A DNA stretch of 64,000 nucleotides, taken from sequence record NC_061448.1; one strand, given 5' to 3'. Every line of letters begins with the position of its first letter. Position 1 is the first letter of the stretch. The notes under the pieces were generated by a model. It was not told the origin of the DNA, did not search any database, and saw only the letters and a program-made list of their open reading frames with translations. A program made the position numbers and the translations under genes. Shown in pieces: positions 3,682-16,763 of this stretch.

Positions 3682-4707
3682 TTATTCCTCCAAGACACCG
3701 CTAATCTCCGAGAACATATTCTTGTACACTAAAGAACCATCCAGCTTGTCGAGTCTCTCAGGCAGAACGTAAAGGTGAGGCGATGTGCGCATGTTAGCCC
3801 ACGTCTTCTCGTTACGATCAAGACCGCCAAGCATAGGCACGATGACCATACTCAGGTTCTTATTTGCTCTGACGAAACCAATGTCAATATGTTTCCTGTT
3901 TATGCTTCTGAACAACTTGTTGATCGCGTCCAAACCAACAGGTCGATTAAATTCCGTATCACTAACAGTATTGACAAGACTGATAAGGAAACCTTTATCC
4001 TTACTTTCAATATCGAACAGGTCAGACTTCAAATCACCAACAGTGGATGCAGCGAAGTACGACACGTCATGCCCGTAGTCTTTGAGACAAGCACCGAGCG
4101 CACGAGCGGATTCGATGTGCGCTACGTTGTCATCTCGCAGAATATAAACAGGTGCATCAGCTTGGTACGTGCGCTGCGCCATCATGTTGATAAGATCGCA
4201 AGAGGGCTTGCCGACAGTGGCTAAGCCCTTATTTGCTATCACGAATTTGTCCTTGTACTGCTCGTAAACATTTGGTGGCATGAACTTCATGTAGTCATCG
4301 TCCAGGCTAAGTATCAAACGAGGCTTAGTTAACTGGACGACGAGTTGCATACTGCGAAGCGATGCCTTGTATTCTGTATCTGAAAGCACACGGCTTATAG
4401 GCAGATACTGCACGACAACGAAACGGTCATCAATTGAATCAACGACCGAACGTATCAAAGTGCTACCGAGCGTAGGACCAGCAGAGAACTGAGTAACGAT
4501 CATCAGGCTGTCTTCAACTAAAGGTGCTGTCGAGGACATTGTGATGCCGTTACCCACTTGCTGCACAGAGCGTTCCCACGTTAGGGCTGGCTCTCCTCCG
4601 TTATCGGCATATACATTAATTGCGCTACACCAGAGACAGGCTCCAAGAATGTAAGCAGCAATACGTTGTCTGGATCGGCTTCGGCTGGATTGACAGTTTC
4701 CGGCCAT
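3682..4707 (-). CDS. Exported protein with probable periplasmic-binding-protein (ABC substrate-binding-like) fold (341 aa)
   Basis: GAGGAG 7 nt before the ATG; signal peptide RSRQR-IAAYILGACLWCS-AINVYA; TKPRLILSLDDD and VYILRDDN...ISLVNTVSD resemble ABC_sub_bind strands. Confidence 0.55.
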   Translation of the reverse strand: MAGNCQSSRSRSRQRIAAYILGACLWCSAINVYADNGGEPALTWERSVQQVGNGITMSSTAPLVEDSLMIVTQFSAGPTLGSTLIRSVVDSIDDRFVVVQYLPISRVLSDTEYKASLRSMQLVVQLTKPRLILSLDDDYMKFMPPNVYEQYKDKFVIANKGLATVGKPSCDLINMMAQRTYQADAPVYILRDDNVAHIESARALGACLKDYGHDVSYFAASTVGDLKSDLFDIESKDKGFLISLVNTVSDTEFNRPVGLDAINKLFRSINRKHIDIGFVRANKNLSMVIVPMLGGLDRNEKTWANMRTSPHLYVLPERLDKLDGSLVYKNMFSEISGVLEE

Positions 4708-5405
4708 AGAACTTCTCCTCTCTCGTCAGTGACGTAAGGAATGCCGGCGCCCTTGCCCAATCCATGTCGCAAGGCCCATACGGTGTCGGCATTCTGTTGC
4801 ACGAACACTAACCCTTTCACTGACGCTTCATCAGTCGCTTGCTCAAGCACCTCAACACGAGATGTTAAGAGCTGGGCATCCGACTGGAGAGTACGAATAG
4901 CAGCAAGGTTAGAGTTAACGCGCGAGTTCATGTTGTTGAACATGGTGAAGAACGAGTTGTTCATCGCCGTGCGAACGCCGTCCGTATAGGACTTAGGAAT
5001 AAGTTCATCGTTGTCGAAGACTGTTACGCCTGTACGAGTCAGAACTTTACCGGTAAGACGTCCACCACTTGCGCTGATAATCTGAGGGGCTGGCAAATCA
5101 GCCTCATCCCAGACTTGAACAGTGGTCATCACCGTATTGTAGTCAGTTTCCTCTTGCCACGTATTCTTGTACGGTGCAGTAGCCGTCTTAGACTTACGAC
5201 GCATGACTTTCTTATAGCCAGCGTTCGCACCATCTGCGATGATCCAGAGACCGTTCAGCGGGAATACGTGAGTGACAGGTTCGACGAAGGAGAGAATGAT
5301 TGTAACATCCGCTCCTACCTTGTACGCAATATCATTCGACGCTGACAGACCTTGCTGTTGTGCAAGACTAATCAACGTGTCCACGTAGTTAGTCAACTGG
5401 CTCAT
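4581..5405 (-). CDS. Virion fibre-associated protein (274 aa)
   Basis: C-terminal W.LRHGLG...PYVTDERGEVLWPE...LLLTFLEPVSG module shared with the 1..362 and 430..2058 proteins. Confidence 0.7.
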   Translation of the reverse strand: MSQLTNYVDTLISLAQQQGLSASNDIAYKVGADVTIILSFVEPVTHVFPLNGLWIIADGANAGYKKVMRRKSKTATAPYKNTWQEETDYNTVMTTVQVWDEADLPAPQIISASGGRLTGKVLTRTGVTVFDNDELIPKSYTDGVRTAMNNSFFTMFNNMNSRVNSNLAAIRTLQSDAQLLTSRVEVLEQATDEASVKGLVFVQQNADTVWALRHGLGKGAGIPYVTDERGEVLWPETVNPAEADPDNVLLLTFLEPVSGVAQLMYMPITEESQP

Positions 5406-9823: not shown

Positions 9824-11842
9824 TTATGCAAAGACCACGTTCGTGATTGCAATGTAATCCATGTTGATACCATCGCCACGGTCCCAGCCAGAACTAACGT
9901 ACAGCCAAATCTCTTCACCTGCCGGAACGTTTACCGGTATAGTGTAGGTCTGAATAGCTGTGTTGTTCAGCGGGTGGAATACAGCAGATGGGTTAGAGCG
10001 TTCGTACCAGTCGAGGCCACTATGCCATGAACCTTGTTTGCCGCTGTAGCGAATATCAACAGTGATTTGAGTGATGCGACGAGTGAAGAAGTTGTTCCAC
10101 TTGAACCAGCCTTTAGAGCCACCCCAGAGAACACCGTAGTCACCATCAGCAGCACGGACTTGCGACCAGAAGTCACCGAAGCCACGACCGCCAGTGTGTT
10201 CAATCTGATAGCAGTACCACGGGAACGGGTCTGCTTCTGGAGGCTGCGCATTGCCGCCTTCGATTGTCACACAACGATATGGAACAGTGAAGTCACTCAC
10301 ATTGATATGTGGAGGCTGAATCGGACAGTACACATAGTACGACCAATCACATCCGATAGGTGCTGTCACGCGAACTGTGATGTTAGCGCGAAGCACATGC
10401 TCAGGGTATTTCCAAAATTCGAGTGTACCAGTTTTCCCTGCTGCAACGATAGACGTATCAAGCAGAGTCATGTTCTGGTCGAACACTTCGAACTTGGTAT
10501 CAAACGAGTTCGCTACACAAACAACAAGCTCGGCGCGAATATCCGTTTGAGTTCCTAATGCAAAATTATCTTCTGTGGTTGGATGACCGGCAGAGTACAC
10601 GCTGTAGCTCTGGCATGGGTGCATGTATTCACGCGCTCCACGTTCACCTGGGCAGTAGAGACTATAGAAGCAACTCGCAAGCGATGCGGCATTGCCGAAG
10701 TCTTTACTGACCACACGCACCATAATGTCACACGCAACGCCTTTAGGGTCAAAGTAGAAATACAGATAACCCTCGCCGGTCTTAGCATCAAGCGTTGTAG
10801 CGATACGTTGCCCGCCTTGGTAGACCTCAATGAAGTCGAACGTTTCCCATGACGTGTAATCGAGATACATCCAGCCTGCAATCCAACCGATGAAGTGATA
10901 GTATTCAAAGGCGTTAGCGTTCTGAATACGTTCAGTGATAGGCCAGACTGTAGCGTGACACGGTGCAGGGAAGATTGGGCTGCCGATATAATCAGGGTGA
11001 ATGACGTCAGGGAAGTTGATAACGTCGTATGCAGCTTGACTATCGAGCGCTAATCCACCACGGTCAGATGGTGCAGCAAGACGAGGCGGATATACTTCGA
11101 GACTCCAGCCATACCCTTGCGTTGTACGCACACGCACCATGATACGCATATCAGACGCGTCAGGGTCGAACTGGAATTTGATTCGAGAACGTCCTGCCAG
11201 TTTGCCACACGTTGAAGCAACACGCGCACCCATGTGATACACATCGACGCTTGCACCGCCGGGCGCATACGACGCAATCATCAGCTCGACATAACCTTCG
11301 ATAGCTGGCATTGCATAGTACGTTTCGGTGATAACAGCACCACGTCCGTGAACAGACGCATACGGTACGTTAGGGTTAGCGTAAGTGCCTAATCCTGCGC
11401 GAGAAGCAACCCCAGTAGGGTCGTAGGATTCGATGGCCTTGATGCCGGGTCTGTTGATAGATCGACCAGTAGGAGGAGCGAAAGAGTTAACAAGACCGAA
11501 GCCAGTGCGACCAGCATCAGGCAAGTCAAACCCCGCAGGATAGCCTGTAAGTATATCATACTTCTCACGGCCGCCACTCCCTATGCCATTGCCTGAGCCT
11601 TTGGTTGTTGACGTAGGACCGCCACCACACGCGCCCGTTTCGAGATTCGAACACGGGTCATCGTATGTGGGGTCAAACGAGTCATCAATGAGATGCCAAC
11701 GCTTGCCCCACTGGTTACGCACACTAAACTTCTCTGGAGTTAAAGGCGTCCAGTCTCCCTGTTGTGTGCGTATGAACATGGGCGTGTCCACACAGTCATG
11801 CCAACCGTTATTCGCAGCATTACGAACGCGAAAACGAGACAT
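9824..11842 (-). CDS. Virion fibre-tip/adhesin-like protein with three repeated beta-sandwich domains (672 aa)
   Basis: Three repeats of about 80 aa ending I.VRV.......W/FS...Y(C)P. Confidence 0.65.
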   Translation of the reverse strand: MSRFRVRNAANNGWHDCVDTPMFIRTQQGDWTPLTPEKFSVRNQWGKRWHLIDDSFDPTYDDPCSNLETGACGGGPTSTTKGSGNGIGSGGREKYDILTGYPAGFDLPDAGRTGFGLVNSFAPPTGRSINRPGIKAIESYDPTGVASRAGLGTYANPNVPYASVHGRGAVITETYYAMPAIEGYVELMIASYAPGGASVDVYHMGARVASTCGKLAGRSRIKFQFDPDASDMRIMVRVRTTQGYGWSLEVYPPRLAAPSDRGGLALDSQAAYDVINFPDVIHPDYIGSPIFPAPCHATVWPITERIQNANAFEYYHFIGWIAGWMYLDYTSWETFDFIEVYQGGQRIATTLDAKTGEGYLYFYFDPKGVACDIMVRVVSKDFGNAASLASCFYSLYCPGERGAREYMHPCQSYSVYSAGHPTTEDNFALGTQTDIRAELVVCVANSFDTKFEVFDQNMTLLDTSIVAAGKTGTLEFWKYPEHVLRANITVRVTAPIGCDWSYYVYCPIQPPHINVSDFTVPYRCVTIEGGNAQPPEADPFPWYCYQIEHTGGRGFGDFWSQVRAADGDYGVLWGGSKGWFKWNNFFTRRITQITVDIRYSGKQGSWHSGLDWYERSNPSAVFHPLNNTAIQTYTIPVNVPAGEEIWLYVSSGWDRGDGINMDYIAITNVVFA

Positions 11843-11851
11843 GCTTTCTCC

Positions 11852-12343
11852 TTACGGTCGAACCCAGATTGCGCCGGGTGCGATTTCCTGATCGATAGCA
11901 GGGTCGGTGTCTTGCACGAAGACTTGTACTGTGCCTGGGTTACCCGGAGCACCTGTAGGACCAGTCGGACCTGTAGGGCCAGCAGGTCCACGATTGCCTA
12001 CGTAACCCTGTTTGCCTTGCTGACCATCAGTACCACGAGGGCCAGGGCAACCGTCTGTGCCTCGACGACCATCAGTACCCATCAGACCGTCAATACCATC
12101 ACGACCAGCAGGACCAACGCCACCAGCAGGACCGTAGCCGATGCTGTGAATAGTAGGCAGACCCGCGATTTGCAGCTTGCCGATATTAGGGATATTGATT
12201 GCCAACACACCAGTAAGCGCATCGAACGCACCGTTTAGAGTGCTATCGTCTTCTGACGTGTCAACAGTAATACCACCTTGTGTCGCTACGACAGGACCAG
12301 AAGCATTAGCCCCGACGAGCGATATATCAACCTTCGATACCAT
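11852..12343 (-). CDS. Collagen-like fibre protein (163 aa)
   Basis: 23 Gly-X-Y triplets; FDALTGVL...GLPT N-motif; VQDTDP...GAIWV C-motif. Confidence 0.85.
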   Translation of the reverse strand: MVSKVDISLVGANASGPVVATQGGITVDTSEDDSTLNGAFDALTGVLAINIPNIGKLQIAGLPTIHSIGYGPAGGVGPAGRDGIDGLMGTDGRRGTDGCPGPRGTDGQQGKQGYVGNRGPAGPTGPTGPTGAPGNPGTVQVFVQDTDPAIDQEIAPGAIWVRP

Positions 12344-12352
12344 GATTACTCC

Positions 12353-12985
12353 TTACGGCCAGGTTGTGCCTTGATCTTTTGTAGGGTCTACCCAGATAGT
12401 TCCGGCTGCAACGTTGCCCGGTTGGGTAGCACTTACGATGATAGACAGACGACCAGCAGGACCCGCTGCACCAGTAGGACCGGTAGGGCCTGTAGCACCA
12501 GTTGCGCCAGTAGGACCCGTGCCACCACGAGGGCCAGTAGGACCGGTAGGCCCCATAGGACCCGTGCGACCATCTGGGCCAGTAGGACCAACAGGACCAG
12601 GCAGACCATCACGTCCATCAGGACCCGGTAGACCTTGCTCACCGTCAGGCCCCACTTCGCCGTCACACCCAGGCTCACCCGGATTACCATCTCGTCCATC
12701 ACGACCGTCTTTACCGTCAGCGCCTGTCTCACCTCTGCCGCCTTGACGGCCTTCTGGAATATCAGACGCTGTGGGGAAGCCGCCGACTTTTACTGTCTCA
12801 CCGTTAGCGAACTTGAGAGTAAGAATACCCGAAGTCGCATCGAACGATGAATCAGCAGTAAGCTCTGCGGGTACGTCAGAATCAGCGGGGTCTATAGCAA
12901 GCACACCAGACTGAGCGCGAATCGCAGTAGCGGTAGTCGTAGAGCCAGCCTGAATGAGACCGGTCTTAACTTTAATCAGACTCAT
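12353..12985 (-). CDS. Collagen-like fibre protein (210 aa)
   Basis: 34 Gly-X-Y triplets; FDATSGIL...GFPT; VSATQP...GTIWV. Confidence 0.85.
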
Positions 12986-14427
12986 TACTTTTTCTCCGCT
13001 TTCGCAACAATATCCGTGTTGTGTACGAGCACATCACCAACGAAGTAGCAGTCAAATGGATCGACGTCAATATCGACTGTCTTCACATGAGCATCGACGC
13101 GGCGGAACTCGTAAATTGACACAGCTCCTTTGCGGCCTAAAACAGTTTGTCCTGCTTGAACATCACGCGCAGGAACATAGCGCCACACGCTGTCATCGTA
13201 AATCAAGACAGGGTGTTCGTGCGTGAACTTCTGACCGTTGATAACGAAGTAATGATCTTCTTCACCGTATTTAAGAGCAGTCACAGTAGCGTTTACCAGA
13301 TTGCCTTTCAGACTTTGAGAAGACCACTGACGGAAGTTCTTCGGTTGATTAGAGAAGCCAAGCAGACTATCGCCGACGCGCACGTCTTCGACAGCTTTAG
13401 GCCCTGTAATCGTTTCTACCTCAGAACCAAACACGATACAACCAGAAGTTGAAGTGTTCGTAGGGTTACGTGCTACGACTGTCAGAGCAGAACTCACAGT
13501 GACAGTTGGACGTGACGTTTGCCCCATGTCAGTTACTACGCAACGGATAGTGCCTTTGATTGTACGGTCCGCACCGAGCCCAAGACGCAGATAGAAGTTA
13601 ACGATACACGTTGAGGATGTTGTAGCATCGAGCGTTACACCCTCAGTAGTTGTGATAGACCACTGATACTTATAAGGGCCTACACCACCACGCGCGTTGA
13701 CAGGCAGATACGCAAGCGAAGTAAACACATCAGAACCCTGTACTGCACGTTGACCGACCATGTACAGACTTGATACTGACGCAGCAAGAGGTGTTATCGT
13801 AGGCAGAGGCGGAGCTGGGGTAACGTTGTTCGTCGGATATAACCAGACAAACACTTTACCATCTGTAGGCTGCGTACTCGACAGCACAGCAGTAGTGATA
13901 GGCGCTGGGCCTGTAGGACCTGTTGCGCCGGAGATACAGCTCGGTCCGTCGTTTCCGCGAGGGCCTATTGGACCCGTAGGACCATCAGGACCATCTGGCC
14001 CCGTAGGACCATCAGGACCCATTCGACCAGTATCGCCCGGAGGACCGTCTTCACCGTCGCGTCCGGGGTCACCGACAGGACCTGTCTTGCCTCTATTGCC
14101 AACCTTACCCTGACAGCCTTGACGACCTGTTTCGCCGTCACGACCATCTCGTCCATCACGACCGGGGGAACCCGGAGCGCCTCGACGCCCAGGCTTCCCT
14201 TCGCCAAACATAGCGACAGTCGGAAGTCCGGGAACGTTTACCACATCCCCGTTCTTCTTGATGAACACTAACACACCTGTCTTGCTGTTAAATCTTACGC
14301 TTGCGAGTTGTGTAAGAGCAGCAGTATCAGATGATTCAAACTGAGCGCTACCACCAACACCAACCAGCGACTTACCTTCATCGTTGGCGGTTGTTTCGAT
14401 TTGCGAAAGTTTTAACTGTGTTGTCAT
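12985..14427 (-). CDS. Collagen-like fibre protein with C-terminal Hint (intein-like) domain (480 aa)
   Basis: 29+3 Gly-X-Y triplets, a beta domain, then C330...TxxH...LVHN470-T471. Confidence 0.85.
13018..13440 (-). other. Hint / mini-intein domain (141 aa, no homing endonuclease)
   Basis: Block A CIVFGSEV, block B FTHEHP, block F VDIDV..FDCYF, block G LVHN followed by Thr. Confidence 0.85.
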
Positions 14428-16763
14428 TTCGGTTCAACCTTAATGCACAAGTTACCAGACAGCTTCGACCCATAGCTTGTGATCTGCGAATCAGTGATAC
14501 GCACCTTAGCTACAATGTCGATGAAGCCCTGAGGCTGGTTCTCAATGAGCACGGTATACATCTGCGTCAGGCTAACGTTTGAGTAAGCAATCACTTCTGT
14601 CAGACTTGCATCCGACGTGACGACGTTGAACCCTGCACTACCTGTACCCTTGAGTCCACGACCGTATTCAGCTTCGGCTGTGCCCGGAACTTTAAACGAC
14701 AGGACGTACTCGATATGCTCTTTACCGCTGGTGGCTGCAAAGCCTGGGCCCAGTTGACATTGGAAGTCAGCGATACACGTAAGCATAACACCCTTGGTAA
14801 AGTCGATGCGTTGAACGATAGTCAGTTCTTCCGAATCTTCTACTACCTGCTGGATGTTGTACATGTTCTTCGGATCAGCTTCTTCGGCGAGTGCCTGAGT
14901 GTTGCTAATCGTAATCTCAGGCCACGTACCTTTAATCTGAATACCTTCGCCCTGAATGATCTCAGGAGTAGCGATAGGCACGTCGATAGGAGGCAGACCC
15001 TGACGCTTGAACATGTAACCGGTCGGTGTAGGGATAGCATCAATGATGACACCATCAACTGAACTGTCTTTCGAACCCACAGCCATAACGTTCTCGAAGA
15101 TTGTGATCTCAACGAGTGTATCAGCAGGGATAGGCGAAAGCGTTTTCAGTGTGTTACCAGCAACCGTAAACTCTTGCGTGTGAACTGTCAGACCACTCAT
15201 TGCTACAATACAGTGCGACTTGCTCAGTGGTGTAGTCGGCAGAGTAAATGTATCAGCATCATAAGGCTGGCGATACTGAGCAACACGAATGCGAGTAGAC
15301 CAGTTGGCGCGTTCTTCATAGCGAGCTACATAGAATGTGTACTTCTGACCAGAAGGAATTGCTTCGGTCAGTGTGACGCTGTTACCGTTCGTGAGTTTGT
15401 ACACGGTGGTAGGCTGCCACGTAGAGCCGACAACACAGAACACCATGTCAACGCTATCAATCGGTTTGTTACCGAGTTTGAACAGAGCAGTCTGACCGTC
15501 ACCTACACCTTCGTATGTTTCGAACAGGACAACGTGACCTTGCGACGGTTCGATACGGAACTGACGCATATCAAGCTGCATACGCTGTTCAGGGTAAGAC
15601 GAAAGCAGAAGCTGATCGTCTACAACGCTATACGCAGTGCGCGGTTGAAGCACACCAGAAGTACCGAGCAGCAAGTCAGTCGAGCTATCGAGAATCTCGG
15701 ACAGCGTGTAACGTAACTTGTCAGGTGTTGCTGTAGTCACAACAGAACTAAACAGCATCTTGCCCGGAGGAACGAATAGCGTACCTTGTGTCTGACGTGT
15801 GCCACCAGCAACAGGTCCCCAATACGGCTGCAAGTCTTTACCACGATACAATGCCCATGCTTCTGGTACATCGTTATTCAGCGGCCACGGAATGCCAGCA
15901 GACGGAGTTGTTGGGTTAGTGATGCGTCGCCACACAGCAATCGAGGTCTGAGCACTAACGAAAGGAATCGCGCTGTCCATGTTGACAAGCTGACCGTTCG
16001 TGTACTTGAAGTGACGACAAGCACCAGCACCTGTGCCTGAGATTGTTTGAACAAGCACAATCTCGTTCGCTTTAAGACTGGTGATTGACGCAATCTTAAA
16101 GGTGTTCGCGTTGATAAATCCAGCAGCAGTAATCTGCCCGCTGAAAATACGGTCATGCTCACTGAAAGCCCAGTAATACGAACCTTGACCATAGCGATAC
16201 GCAGTGCCCGGAGAGCGTGTGCCGTCAGAGTTAACGTGCATGTCAAGGACAGACACAGCGTTGAACACGTTATCGTTCAAGCTCGGAAGGTTTTGCAGCG
16301 TTGCCACACTCGGTATTGAAGTGTAGTCGGCCATCTTAACAGCAAGAATCTTTTGAATGTCCTGCTGGATATGTACGAGAAGACTAACACGGCTGATAGA
16401 GTTCGGCACAGCGATGATAGGCTCTTCCAAGACAACGTGACCGAAAGGTCTGTTATCTGAGAGCATGATCAACAGCTCACCTACTCGTTTAAGCGTTTCA
16501 CCTTCAACGTATTTGACTTTAATATCAAAGACGAAGCGAGCGCTGTTCTCGGTAAGAACCTGAACATATGACAATGCGCCCGACGCAAGCTCGTTGCCAA
16601 GTAACTGCTCTGGAACCACTGATGGGTTTGAGCCTACAAAGTCACCTGCTTTGAATGCTACTGGGGATATTGCAAGTCCACCAGCATTCGCGTTCGCAAC
16701 GGCCTGTTCTCCCTGAGGCGTTAGACGCAGAGCGTTAACGTAGATAGATTCAGTGGCCATCAA
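14424..16763 (-). CDS. Baseplate-attached tail fibre / tail-collar protein (779 aa)
   Basis: N-terminus LTPQGEQAVANANAGGLAISPVAFKAGD resembles the phage tail-collar fibre N-domain; repeated GDG...F.L beta units; follows the wedge genes. Confidence 0.65.
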   Translation of the reverse strand: MMATESIYVNALRLTPQGEQAVANANAGGLAISPVAFKAGDFVGSNPSVVPEQLLGNELASGALSYVQVLTENSARFVFDIKVKYVEGETLKRVGELLIMLSDNRPFGHVVLEEPIIAVPNSISRVSLLVHIQQDIQKILAVKMADYTSIPSVATLQNLPSLNDNVFNAVSVLDMHVNSDGTRSPGTAYRYGQGSYYWAFSEHDRIFSGQITAAGFINANTFKIASITSLKANEIVLVQTISGTGAGACRHFKYTNGQLVNMDSAIPFVSAQTSIAVWRRITNPTTPSAGIPWPLNNDVPEAWALYRGKDLQPYWGPVAGGTRQTQGTLFVPPGKMLFSSVVTTATPDKLRYTLSEILDSSTDLLLGTSGVLQPRTAYSVVDDQLLLSSYPEQRMQLDMRQFRIEPSQGHVVLFETYEGVGDGQTALFKLGNKPIDSVDMVFCVVGSTWQPTTVYKLTNGNSVTLTEAIPSGQKYTFYVARYEERANWSTRIRVAQYRQPYDADTFTLPTTPLSKSHCIVAMSGLTVHTQEFTVAGNTLKTLSPIPADTLVEITIFENVMAVGSKDSSVDGVIIDAIPTPTGYMFKRQGLPPIDVPIATPEIIQGEGIQIKGTWPEITISNTQALAEEADPKNMYNIQQVVEDSEELTIVQRIDFTKGVMLTCIADFQCQLGPGFAATSGKEHIEYVLSFKVPGTAEAEYGRGLKGTGSAGFNVVTSDASLTEVIAYSNVSLTQMYTVLIENQPQGFIDIVAKVRITDSQITSYGSKLSGNLCIKVEPK

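Follow-up and report, generated by a model that had tools for sequence, protein, structure and literature searches.

In the Hint superfamily, the first residue of the domain (Cys1) forms a thioester with the carbonyl of the preceding residue (position −1), and a C-terminal His-Asn pair cleaves the C-terminal junction by succinimide formation. Bacterial intein-like (BIL) domains have been known since 2003. Type-A BILs end in His-Asn, have no +1 nucleophile, and reside in variable proteins (PMC4031507, PMC7765530); their reaction combines thioester formation and Asn cyclization with attack by the amine freed at the C-terminal fragment (PMC4031507). In BIL2 of Tetrahymena, a lysine of the C-extein serves as the nucleophile, which joins its ε-amine to the C terminus of the N-extein by an isopeptide bond without ATP, and this activity is reported to be zinc-linked (PMC8616854). 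As a role for BIL domains, reviews suggest only added protein variability, in general terms. Here, we analyzed a 64,000-nt stretch of sequence record NC_061448.1 (below, the window) that encodes gp111, a collagen-like fiber protein of Erwinia phage pEa_SNUABM_1. The protein ends with a complete Hint domain whose nearest relatives are BIL domains and which may remove itself from the fiber.

The pEa_SNUABM_1 genome (266,939 bp, genus Alexandravirus) is 100% identical to the window at positions 12985 to 14427; window coordinates are those of NC_061448.1 minus 62,000. The 480–amino acid (aa) translation of gp111 is 100% identical to YP_010302233, annotated as “virion structural protein,” and its precursor has a predicted mass of 50.35 kDa.

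Fold and catalytic residues of the gp111 Hint domain

The layout of gp111, which is followed by two collagen-like paralogues, gp110 and gp109, is given below in window coordinates, with (−) for the minus strand and pLDDT for the predicted local distance difference test of the structural model.

12985–14427 (−): gp111, collagen-like fiber protein of 480 aa with a Hint domain at its C-terminal end; coding sequence including the stop codon
14203–14427 (−): N-terminal domain, residues 1–75; common to gp110 and gp109 in the paralogue alignment, with PHROG tail-fiber matches
13903–14202 (−): collagen Gly-X-Y repeats, residues 76–175; Cys105 invariant and at the same position in the three paralogues
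13786–13902 (−): post-collagen “cap” and Pro-rich linker, residues 176–214; Trp195/Pro198 motif
13465–13785 (−): Ig-like β-sandwich, residues 215–321; AlphaFold2 strands and Ig/PapD-like fold matches
13441–13464 (−): flexible linker, residues 322–329; ends in the invariant Gly329, pLDDT dips to ~66
13018–13440 (−): Hint domain of the type-A BIL/PT-HINT kind, residues 330–470; Cys330, Thr402-x-x-His405, Asp452/454/459, His469-Asn470
12988–13017 (−): 10-aa tail, residues 471–480; Thr471, Asp472, Lys476, Lys479, and Lys480, pLDDT below 50, predicted flexible
12994–12997 (−): Shine-Dalgarno–like GGAG for gp110, embedded in the Ala477-Glu478 codons of gp111

A complete Hint domain is present in gp111, and the match is far beyond chance. 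PT-HINT (Pfam PF07591) matches residues 337 to 470 (28.3 bits, E = 2.4e-6), just above its curated cut-off of 27.7 bits; no other Pfam Hint model passed its own cut-off on gp111, and Hint_2 was sub-threshold. Among Protein Data Bank (PDB) sequences, phmmer gave its best match with 2lwy, the C. thermocellum BIL domain (E = 3.9e-7); the alignment spans the domain, beginning one residue after Cys1 and ending with the terminal His-Asn. Residues 200 to 480 were modeled with AlphaFold2 from a 66-row alignment, and the model had a mean pLDDT of 92.6 and consisted of the Ig-like sandwich, a low-confidence linker, the Hint domain, and a disordered tail. The Hint part of the model superposes on 2lwy with a template modeling (TM) score of 0.82 and a root mean square deviation of 2.2 Å; ranks 1 to 5 of the Foldseek search were taken by 2lwy and Tetrahymena BIL2 (TM score of 0.72), and inteins came only after them. 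Across 21 orthologues of 476 to 480 aa, there is no variation at Gly329, Cys330, Thr402, His405, Asp452, Asp454, Asp459, His469, or Asn470.

An earlier reading of the DNA letters without database searches (below, the sequence-only reading) had described this domain as a complete Hint/mini-intein domain. Its boundaries proved exact, with residue 330 starting at 13440 and residue 470 ending at 13018, and the catalytic set that it had listed (Cys1, TxxH, block F Asp, and His-Asn) is all present and invariant in the orthologues named above. Thr471 follows at the +1 position, and the stop codon stands after residue 480, so that the C-terminal tail is indeed only 10 aa long. The absence of a homing endonuclease was likewise borne out: the domain comprises 141 residues without an insertion, and a Pfam scan revealed no endonuclease family match in it. 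The “mini-intein” label did not hold, since the nearest relatives by both sequence and fold are BIL domains. No Hint domains other than that of gp111 were found in the 64-kb window. At least 90% of the orthologues from Erwinia phages have a second Cys in block F, Cys460 (13048–13050, −), which is not a feature of the wider family.

The part of gp111 that precedes the Hint domain is that of a fiber. The Pfam Collagen model matches with E = 8.9e-15, and the Trp195/Pro198 cap motif forms the C terminus of gp110 and gp109. The strands of the Ig-like domain, at model residues 16 to 122, have pLDDT values above 90, and the domain shows weak SprB and Hoc-like matches; a 324-aa protein of Dickeya phage JA13 matches the region with 41% identity. 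Residues 1 to 75 are presumed to be a virion-proximal attachment or registration domain, and the Ig-like domain would be the last domain of the mature fiber if the Hint domain were removed. Gly329 is predicted to be the acyl donor of a scissile Gly329/Cys330 bond.

Distribution of the Hint cassette and its lysine-bearing tails

To use the terms applied to inteins, residues upstream of Cys330 form the N-extein, and the 10-aa tail is the “C-extein.” The Ig-like N-extein was found in 59 phage records, and in 53 of them, a Hint domain is present at the same site, which answers a check proposed in the sequence-only reading, namely whether relatives retain the domain. The six Hint-less records belong to the four Dickeya JA phages of a single genus, Salmondvirus. 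In JA11, the syntenic protein gp096 (324 aa) aligns over the whole N-extein and ends six residues before the Gly329/Cys330 junction; its gene ends 10 bases ahead of the next gene and contains neither a Hint remnant nor a tail. The JA allele was detected by synteny alone, with gp112, the gene upstream of gp111, as the anchor; a search with the N-extein alone in a set of 5.8 billion proteins returned only Hint-bearing orthologues. Since the JA allele lacks the “C-extein” as well, nothing is interrupted in gp111, and the Hint domain together with its tail is an add-on. An intein-free allele of an interrupted gene would show the reverse of this pattern. Phage AD1, whose virion morphology is the same as that of the JA phages (PMC6143709), carries the Hint domain, unlike them.

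Selection on the domain was estimated from the ratio of nonsynonymous to synonymous divergence (dN/dS) in eight phage orthologues with dS of ~1. The values were 0.107 for the Hint domain, 0.114 for the N-terminal domain, 0.157 for the collagen repeats, and 0.106 for the cap and the Ig-like domain. Among the orthologues, Thr, Ala, Ser, Val, or Met occupies the +1 position, with the rest of the catalytic set intact. When a profile of the phage copies was compared with PDB sequences, 2lwy scored E = 2e-14, BIL2 scored 3.8e-9, and the best intein, gp41-1, scored 1.6e-7. The domain thus ends in His-Asn, has no conserved +1 residue, is closer to BILs than to inteins or Hedgehog (Hog) domains, and sits in variable host proteins, all of which are traits of type-A BILs. 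The marks of a class-1 intein (a conserved +1 Cys, Ser, or Thr; contiguous exteins in intein-free alleles; and an endonuclease or a sporadic distribution) were not found.

These comparisons support the view that the gp111 Hint domain is a domesticated, fixed, and selected part of its gene rather than a selfish insert. That the domain is domesticated had already been suggested in the sequence-only reading, and this part stood: the site is the same in all Hint-bearing relatives, dN/dS is similar to that of the rest of the fiber, and there is no endonuclease. The same reading had named patchy presence together with endonuclease-bearing alleles in relatives as the pattern of an ordinary mobile intein. 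Patchiness was observed in one lineage, the Salmondvirus JA phages, where the “C-extein” is also missing; no endonuclease-bearing alleles were found. A selfish mobile mini-intein that happened to land near the end of a fiber gene could explain why the JA lineage lacks the domain, and an HNH endonuclease gene is located ~8 kb away in the same cluster. However, the insert contains no endonuclease domain or remnant, the Hint-less allele shows that no host protein was interrupted, selection on the Hint domain equals that on the host gene, and the same cassette is found on many unrelated fiber proteins, with two or three copies per genome. On the grounds of the fixed position, the selection, the missing endonuclease, and the form of the Hint-less allele, we rejected the mobile-intein explanation, to which we give next to no credence.

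The extent of the family was estimated by a phmmer scan of 1.84 billion representatives (E ≤ 1e-3), which yielded 505 matching representatives. The His-Asn pair is recognizable in 146 of 149 representatives and in all 82 aligned family members, and PT-HINT matches 44 of these 82. Residue 1 is Cys in all 72 alignments that reach the N-terminal block; position −1 is Gly in 54 of them and position −2 in 34, and a run of at least four Gly precedes Cys1 in 24. The catalytic positions do not vary in this family, in which identities have fallen to 20 to 30%. Fewer than 15 residues follow the predicted Asn in 119 of the 170 family proteins analyzed, and tails of 1 to 20 residues are present in 107 of the 146 non-orthologue representatives with a recognizable His-Asn. 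The N-exteins are fiber-type modules: collagen (11 of 82), fn3, Ig, PKD, BACON, Calx-beta, PASTA, and tail-collar N-terminal domains. Matches in BFVD agree in that Hint cassettes are found on phage fiber-type proteins. Overall, the cassette ends many unrelated fiber proteins, and some jumbo phages have two or three of them per genome.

Five of six inspected gene contexts are recognizable phage tail modules. In one, a Hint-tipped gene lies at the end of a baseplate and fiber module (L006:6541-9089), beside a fiber that has a Peptidase_S74 end (a weak match). A 329-kb metagenomic jumbo contig shows the same synteny as gp111 and encodes a second Hint-tipped protein; in another contig, the Hint-tipped gene follows an NlpC/P60 gene, a position typical of a J-like tip protein. 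Phage NCTB has three Hint genes in a syntenic cluster, and the cassette of Alcaligenes phage Afa-NA1 is located in a tail module. No recognizable tail marker was present in the sixth context (contig L021).

Several members of the family deserve separate mention. BN7874_132 of NCTB (L005:3420-7334, −) is a 1,304-aa protein whose N terminus matches gp108 and which has its own Hint cassette at the end, unlike gp108 of the window (9824–11842), which has none. The second Hint-tipped protein of the 329-kb contig (L019:14632-17527) is also 1,304 aa long and contains Calx-beta. Between the gp111 orthologue of NCTB and the next fiber gene, there is a free-standing 153-aa Hint-like gene, BN7874_135 (L005:8698-9159, −), which retains His-Asn and a three-residue tail with Lys and has lost the block B Thr and His, with poor alignment at Cys1; this copy looks degenerate or repurposed. 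A “stand-alone” Hint of ~150 aa, P0043 (L010:1112-1756), was rejected as a gene-call artifact at a scaffold gap: its frame runs on upstream through the gap to a Gly-Cys junction and a long fiber-like open reading frame (ORF). Metagenomic “stand-alone” Hints of ~150 aa that start with Met-Ala-Asp-Gly thus include gene-call truncations (one checked). In some long proteins (P0031, P0044, P0085, P0105, and others), Hint domains are arranged in tandem: after the His-Asn of one domain come Lys, a few Gly, and then Cys1 of the following domain. Identical match statistics were obtained for two records of modest genome size and different named hosts, Afa-NA1 (78 kb) and phage Sen-NF of Salmonella (108 kb), and Afa-NA1 shows jumbo-phage fiber synteny; both may be partial or misassigned assemblies of one jumbo phage. 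The family profile also matches PDB entry 8w20, a 1,368-aa “Intein C-terminal splicing domain-containing protein,” at residues 1081 to 1223 (E = 2.3e-7); judging by the ~145 residues that follow the match, this is probably a PT-HINT in a toxin setting.

GenBank notes for proteins of phages Y3 and NCTB state “contains intein domain.” The searchable literature yielded no papers on Hint-tipped phage fibers, a C-terminal cassette family, the Gly junction, or the lysine tail and no virion proteome or autocleavage data for phages of the pEa_SNUABM_1 group. The kind of domain is therefore already known, while its setting at the ends of phage fibers and its architecture are new.

The short tails that follow the His-Asn pair are rich in lysine. 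As a control, we used C termini of matched length from 143 greedy-called genes of the same phage loci. Lys is present in 103 of 107 short tails (96%) versus 33% of the control C termini, and it is among the last two residues in 59 of 107 tails versus 9% in the control. An earlier, cruder control of 133 phage ORFs from the same loci gave 28 and 10% for the same two measures. Counted by position, Lys is penultimate in 39 of 102 tails and terminal in 21 of 107. Lys makes up 13.1% and Arg 1.8% of tail residues compared to 5.5 and 6.6%, respectively, in control gene ends. Since Lys is enriched and Arg is not, the signal is specific to lysine rather than to positive charge. The difference between 96% and the 28 to 33% of control C termini also led us to reject an A-rich gene end or a ribosome-binding site as the source of the enrichment. 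The Hint-tipped gene of the L006 locus, downstream of which lie a terminator and a convergent gene, keeps a penultimate Lys as well.

Other tail positions are less uniform. The +1 residue in the 107 tails is Ala in 20, Lys in 20, Ser in 11, Val in 11, and Thr in 3, and it is never Cys; +2 is Asp or Glu in 35%. Lys occupies +1 in 25 of 39 members that have more protein after the Asn (tandem Hints and long C-terminal regions). The weight placed on Thr+1 in the sequence-only reading is not sustained: the position is Ala, Ser, Val, or Met in orthologues, and Ser or Thr is found there in only 14 of 107 family members. Since +1 is mostly neither Ser nor Thr and never Cys in the family, class-1 splicing cannot be the conserved chemistry.

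In gp111 itself, the tail overlaps a signal of the next gene. Nine bases, GCGGAGAAA (window 12991–12999, −), encode Ala477-Glu478-Lys479 and are identical in eight phages, even at synonymous sites, although the synonymous divergence of these phages is ~1. The nonamer contains the GGAG located upstream of the overlapping gp110 start; here, a ribosome-binding site mimics amino acid conservation. At residues 472 to 475, there are synonymous changes among orthologues, with the amino acids conserved.

Proposed autoprocessing and its alternatives

From the features described above, we propose that residues 330 to 480 are a domesticated type-A BIL autoprocessing cap that would cut the Gly329/Cys330 bond through a thioester, which an amine of the tail would capture. 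We put the chance that this reading is correct at about even. In such a reaction, Cys330 would attack the carbonyl of Gly329 (an N-S acyl shift), giving a Gly329 thioester, and Asn470 would cyclize with the help of His469, freeing the 10-aa tail. The thioester would then be resolved by a tail amine, either the new α-amine of residue 471, in line with the mechanism proposed for type-A BILs, or the ε-amine of a tail Lys, in line with Tetrahymena BIL2. The Hint domain (15.85 kDa) would be discarded, leaving a mature fiber of 33.44 kDa if free-ended or of 34.52 kDa if the 1.1-kDa tail is attached to it, either linearly or via a lysine. This fiber would end at or just after the Ig-like domain, as does the Hint-less Dickeya JA allele. 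The natural JA allele demonstrates the viability of a fiber that ends at the Ig-like domain. The sequence-only reading had considered a self-removing chaperone, splicing onto the short tag, or transfer to another nucleophile; the JA11 allele, combined with the family-wide His-Asn and Lys tail, appears to favor removal with tail capture. By analogy with other self-removing fiber modules, the most likely benefit to the phage would be that of a transient pro-domain for fiber folding or assembly. If the proposal is correct, annotation is affected, since the mature product would be ~16 kDa shorter than the ORF, and truncated “stand-alone Hint” calls in metagenomes would be explained.

Several observations weigh against this proposal. 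Hint domains are not known to trimerize, and the chaperone rationale is an analogy only; gp110 and gp109 have collagen repeats without any Hint domain, so folding manages without it. The tail is modeled as disordered. The lysine statistic counts representatives and not independent events, and the invariance of Ala477-Glu478-Lys479, which extends to the nucleotides and coincides with the GGAG of gp110, does not speak for a function of the peptide. For type-A BILs, cleavage products dominate (PMC4031507, PMC7765530), and ligation is denied altogether in one of these papers (PMC7765530); the ligation step may be minor. Processing of gp111 is itself something that we infer from its sequence.

These same properties of BILs are consistent with hydrolysis only, whereby the fiber would end in a free Gly329, the Hint domain and the tail would leave together, and the tail with its Lys would either serve the Hint domain, through tuning of Asn cyclization or solubility, or be incidental. 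The JA11 allele indicates that the fiber needs nothing past the Ig-like domain, and other phage fibers use the self-cleaving Peptidase_S74 end, one of which adjoins a Hint-tipped gene. Yet, hydrolysis alone leaves unaccounted for both the near-universality of His-Asn (146 of 149) ahead of a mere 1 to 20 residues and the presence of Lys, but not Arg, in 96% of the tails, and we consider it rather unlikely. Linear splicing of the class-1 type, in which Thr471 would take the acyl group, Asn470 would cyclize, and the fiber would end in the 10 tail residues, is compatible with the Cys1, Thr-x-x-His, block F Asp, His-Asn, and Thr+1 of pEa_SNUABM_1 and its closest relatives. Otherwise intact orthologues have Ala, Val, Ser, or Met at +1, though, only 3 of the 107 family tails have Thr there, and BILs are the nearest relatives, which makes such splicing highly improbable. 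We attach similarly little weight to an unprocessed distal knob, e.g., a binding domain, whose catalytic residues would be kept for structure. The RefSeq label “virion structural protein” and the well-folded Hint domain of the model would fit a knob, but the catalytic positions remain invariant despite family identities of 20 to 30%, the sole clearly degenerate copy observed (BN7874_135 of NCTB) has lost block B, and the JA phages have no knob at all.

Two further possibilities concern the nucleophile that would capture the thioester. The cassette may be a single-turnover ligase that operates without ATP or E1/E2/E3 and transfers a terminal Gly thioester to a lysine ε-amine; this is a tentative reading, which we rate as possible. 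The acceptor lysine could be in the tail itself, resulting in a branched, isopeptide-capped fiber tip, or on a protein of the virion or the host surface. In gp111, Gly329 is invariant, and Lys476, Lys479, and Lys480 of the tail might act in such a reaction, the conservation of Lys479 being confounded by the gp110 ribosome-binding site. If the ligase reading is true, it would mark the first case of isopeptide conjugation by a BIL-type domain in a virus and would give a biological role to the large family of Hint-tipped phage fibers and, more broadly, to BIL domains. Ligation only in trans, similar to that of Hedgehog or BUBL proteins, would instead pass Gly329 to a Lys of a virion protein, an amine or hydroxyl of the host surface, or a small molecule. 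It is in line with the conjugation of the BIL2 N-extein to several substrates without ATP (PMC8616854), with a Gly-rich junction resembling the end of ubiquitin-like domains (Gly at −1 in 54 of 72 and at least four Gly in 24 of 72), and with the location of the cassette on distal fiber ends and on a J-like tip protein, which are sites of surface contact. On the other hand, any outside nucleophile would face competition from a cis lysine on the flexible tail, the Hint domain is not followed by a sterol-recognition region or another adaptor, and the JA phages manage without the domain. Thioesters are also labile, and a stored warhead in free virions has no known precedent. We therefore regard ligation in trans as improbable and prefer the autoprocessing cap with capture by the tail.

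Neighboring genes and comparison with known systems

The genes around gp111 all belong to a stretch of tail genes, in which those for a PAAR protein, a baseplate wedge protein, and a tail protein of 1,511 aa are followed by gp112 and gp111; gp110 and gp109, both annotated as “tail fibre,” are placed after gp111, and two large proteins come next. The immediate neighbors in the window are as follows.

14424–16763 (−): gp112, tail-collar-fiber–like, upstream of gp111; synteny anchor for relatives
12353–12985 (−): gp110, collagen-like paralogue of 210 aa without Ig or Hint domain
11852–12343 (−): gp109, collagen-like paralogue of 163 aa without Ig or Hint domain

The stop codon of gp112 overlaps the start codon of gp111 (ATGA), and the stop codon of gp111 overlaps the start codon of gp110 by one base (TAATG). 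Together, gp111, gp110, and gp109 (11852–14427, −) are tandem collagen-like paralogues with a common 75-aa N-terminal domain; they also share the collagen Cys (Cys105 in gp111) and the post-collagen Trp/Pro cap. The trio is kept from Erwinia phages to NCTB and PaBG. The three proteins might form one C1q-like heterotrimer instead of three homotrimers. The clade of pEa_SNUABM_1 shows a “hairy Myoviridae” morphology, with the hair-forming proteins unassigned (PMC6143709), and the trio is a candidate for the hairs of this phage group. The HNH endonuclease gene mentioned above, gp103 (4581–5405, −; 66581–67405 of the record), is located within the tail-fiber cluster and overlaps the end of the preceding fiber gene; at ~8 kb from the Hint domain, it shows no sign of association with it.

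Compared to known systems, the gp111 domain is most similar to the type-A BIL of C. thermocellum (2lwy), with which it shares Cys1, the block B Thr and His, the C-terminal His-Asn, and the lack of a conserved +1 nucleophile. Like the phage cassette, type-A BILs sit in variable surface-type proteins and not in conserved enzymes. The BILs described so far come from bacteria and lie within their proteins, whereas the phage domain is at the extreme C terminus, followed by a Lys-bearing tail of 1 to 20 aa, and is carried by fiber modules. In these phages, then, host-contact proteins carry a BIL-type domain as a fixed and selected terminal piece, which recurs across hundreds of divergent phage proteins. 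BIL2 of Tetrahymena thermophila BUBL1 (PDB 6y75 and 6tmm) ranks second in both the fold and the profile comparison, and a Gly-Gly pair closes its N-extein ahead of residue 1, similar to the phage Gly junction. The exteins of BIL2 are ubiquitin-like, and its conjugate has a signaling role, while the C-extein of gp111 is a bare peptide. If our proposal is correct, the cassette would provide a natural and compact Gly-thioester/Lys system for comparison with conjugation by Tetrahymena BIL2.

Other Hint domains are more distant. In polymorphic toxins, PT-HINT (PF07591) is followed by a toxin domain, which it presumably releases; in gp111, 10 residues and a stop codon follow, with no toxin. Hedgehog proteins resemble gp111 in having a C-terminal Hint domain, a Gly-Cys thioester, and an N-terminal product with a modified C terminus (PMC7765530). 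Hog domains have a sterol-recognition region and no His-Asn end, whereas gp111 has His-Asn and no further region, and the Pfam Hint model for Hog (PF01079) gave no match on gp111. Class-1 phage mini-inteins such as gp41-1 (PDB 6qaz) have the same fold as the gp111 domain and the same catalytic blocks (A, B, F, and G). Inteins, however, interrupt conserved enzymes, need a +1 Cys, Ser, or Thr, and have contiguous exteins in intein-free alleles, none of which applies to the gp111 domain.

The closest functional parallel is the Peptidase_S74 chaperone, also a C-terminal module of phage spikes and fibers that removes itself after assembly, as we propose for the gp111 Hint domain. The analogy is one of function only: Peptidase_S74 has an unrelated fold and chemistry, Ser-Lys proteolysis, and its model (PF13884) gave no match on gp111. 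Should the proposal be correct, the Hint cassette would be a second, chemically distinct self-removing C-terminal module for phage fibers, beside Peptidase_S74.

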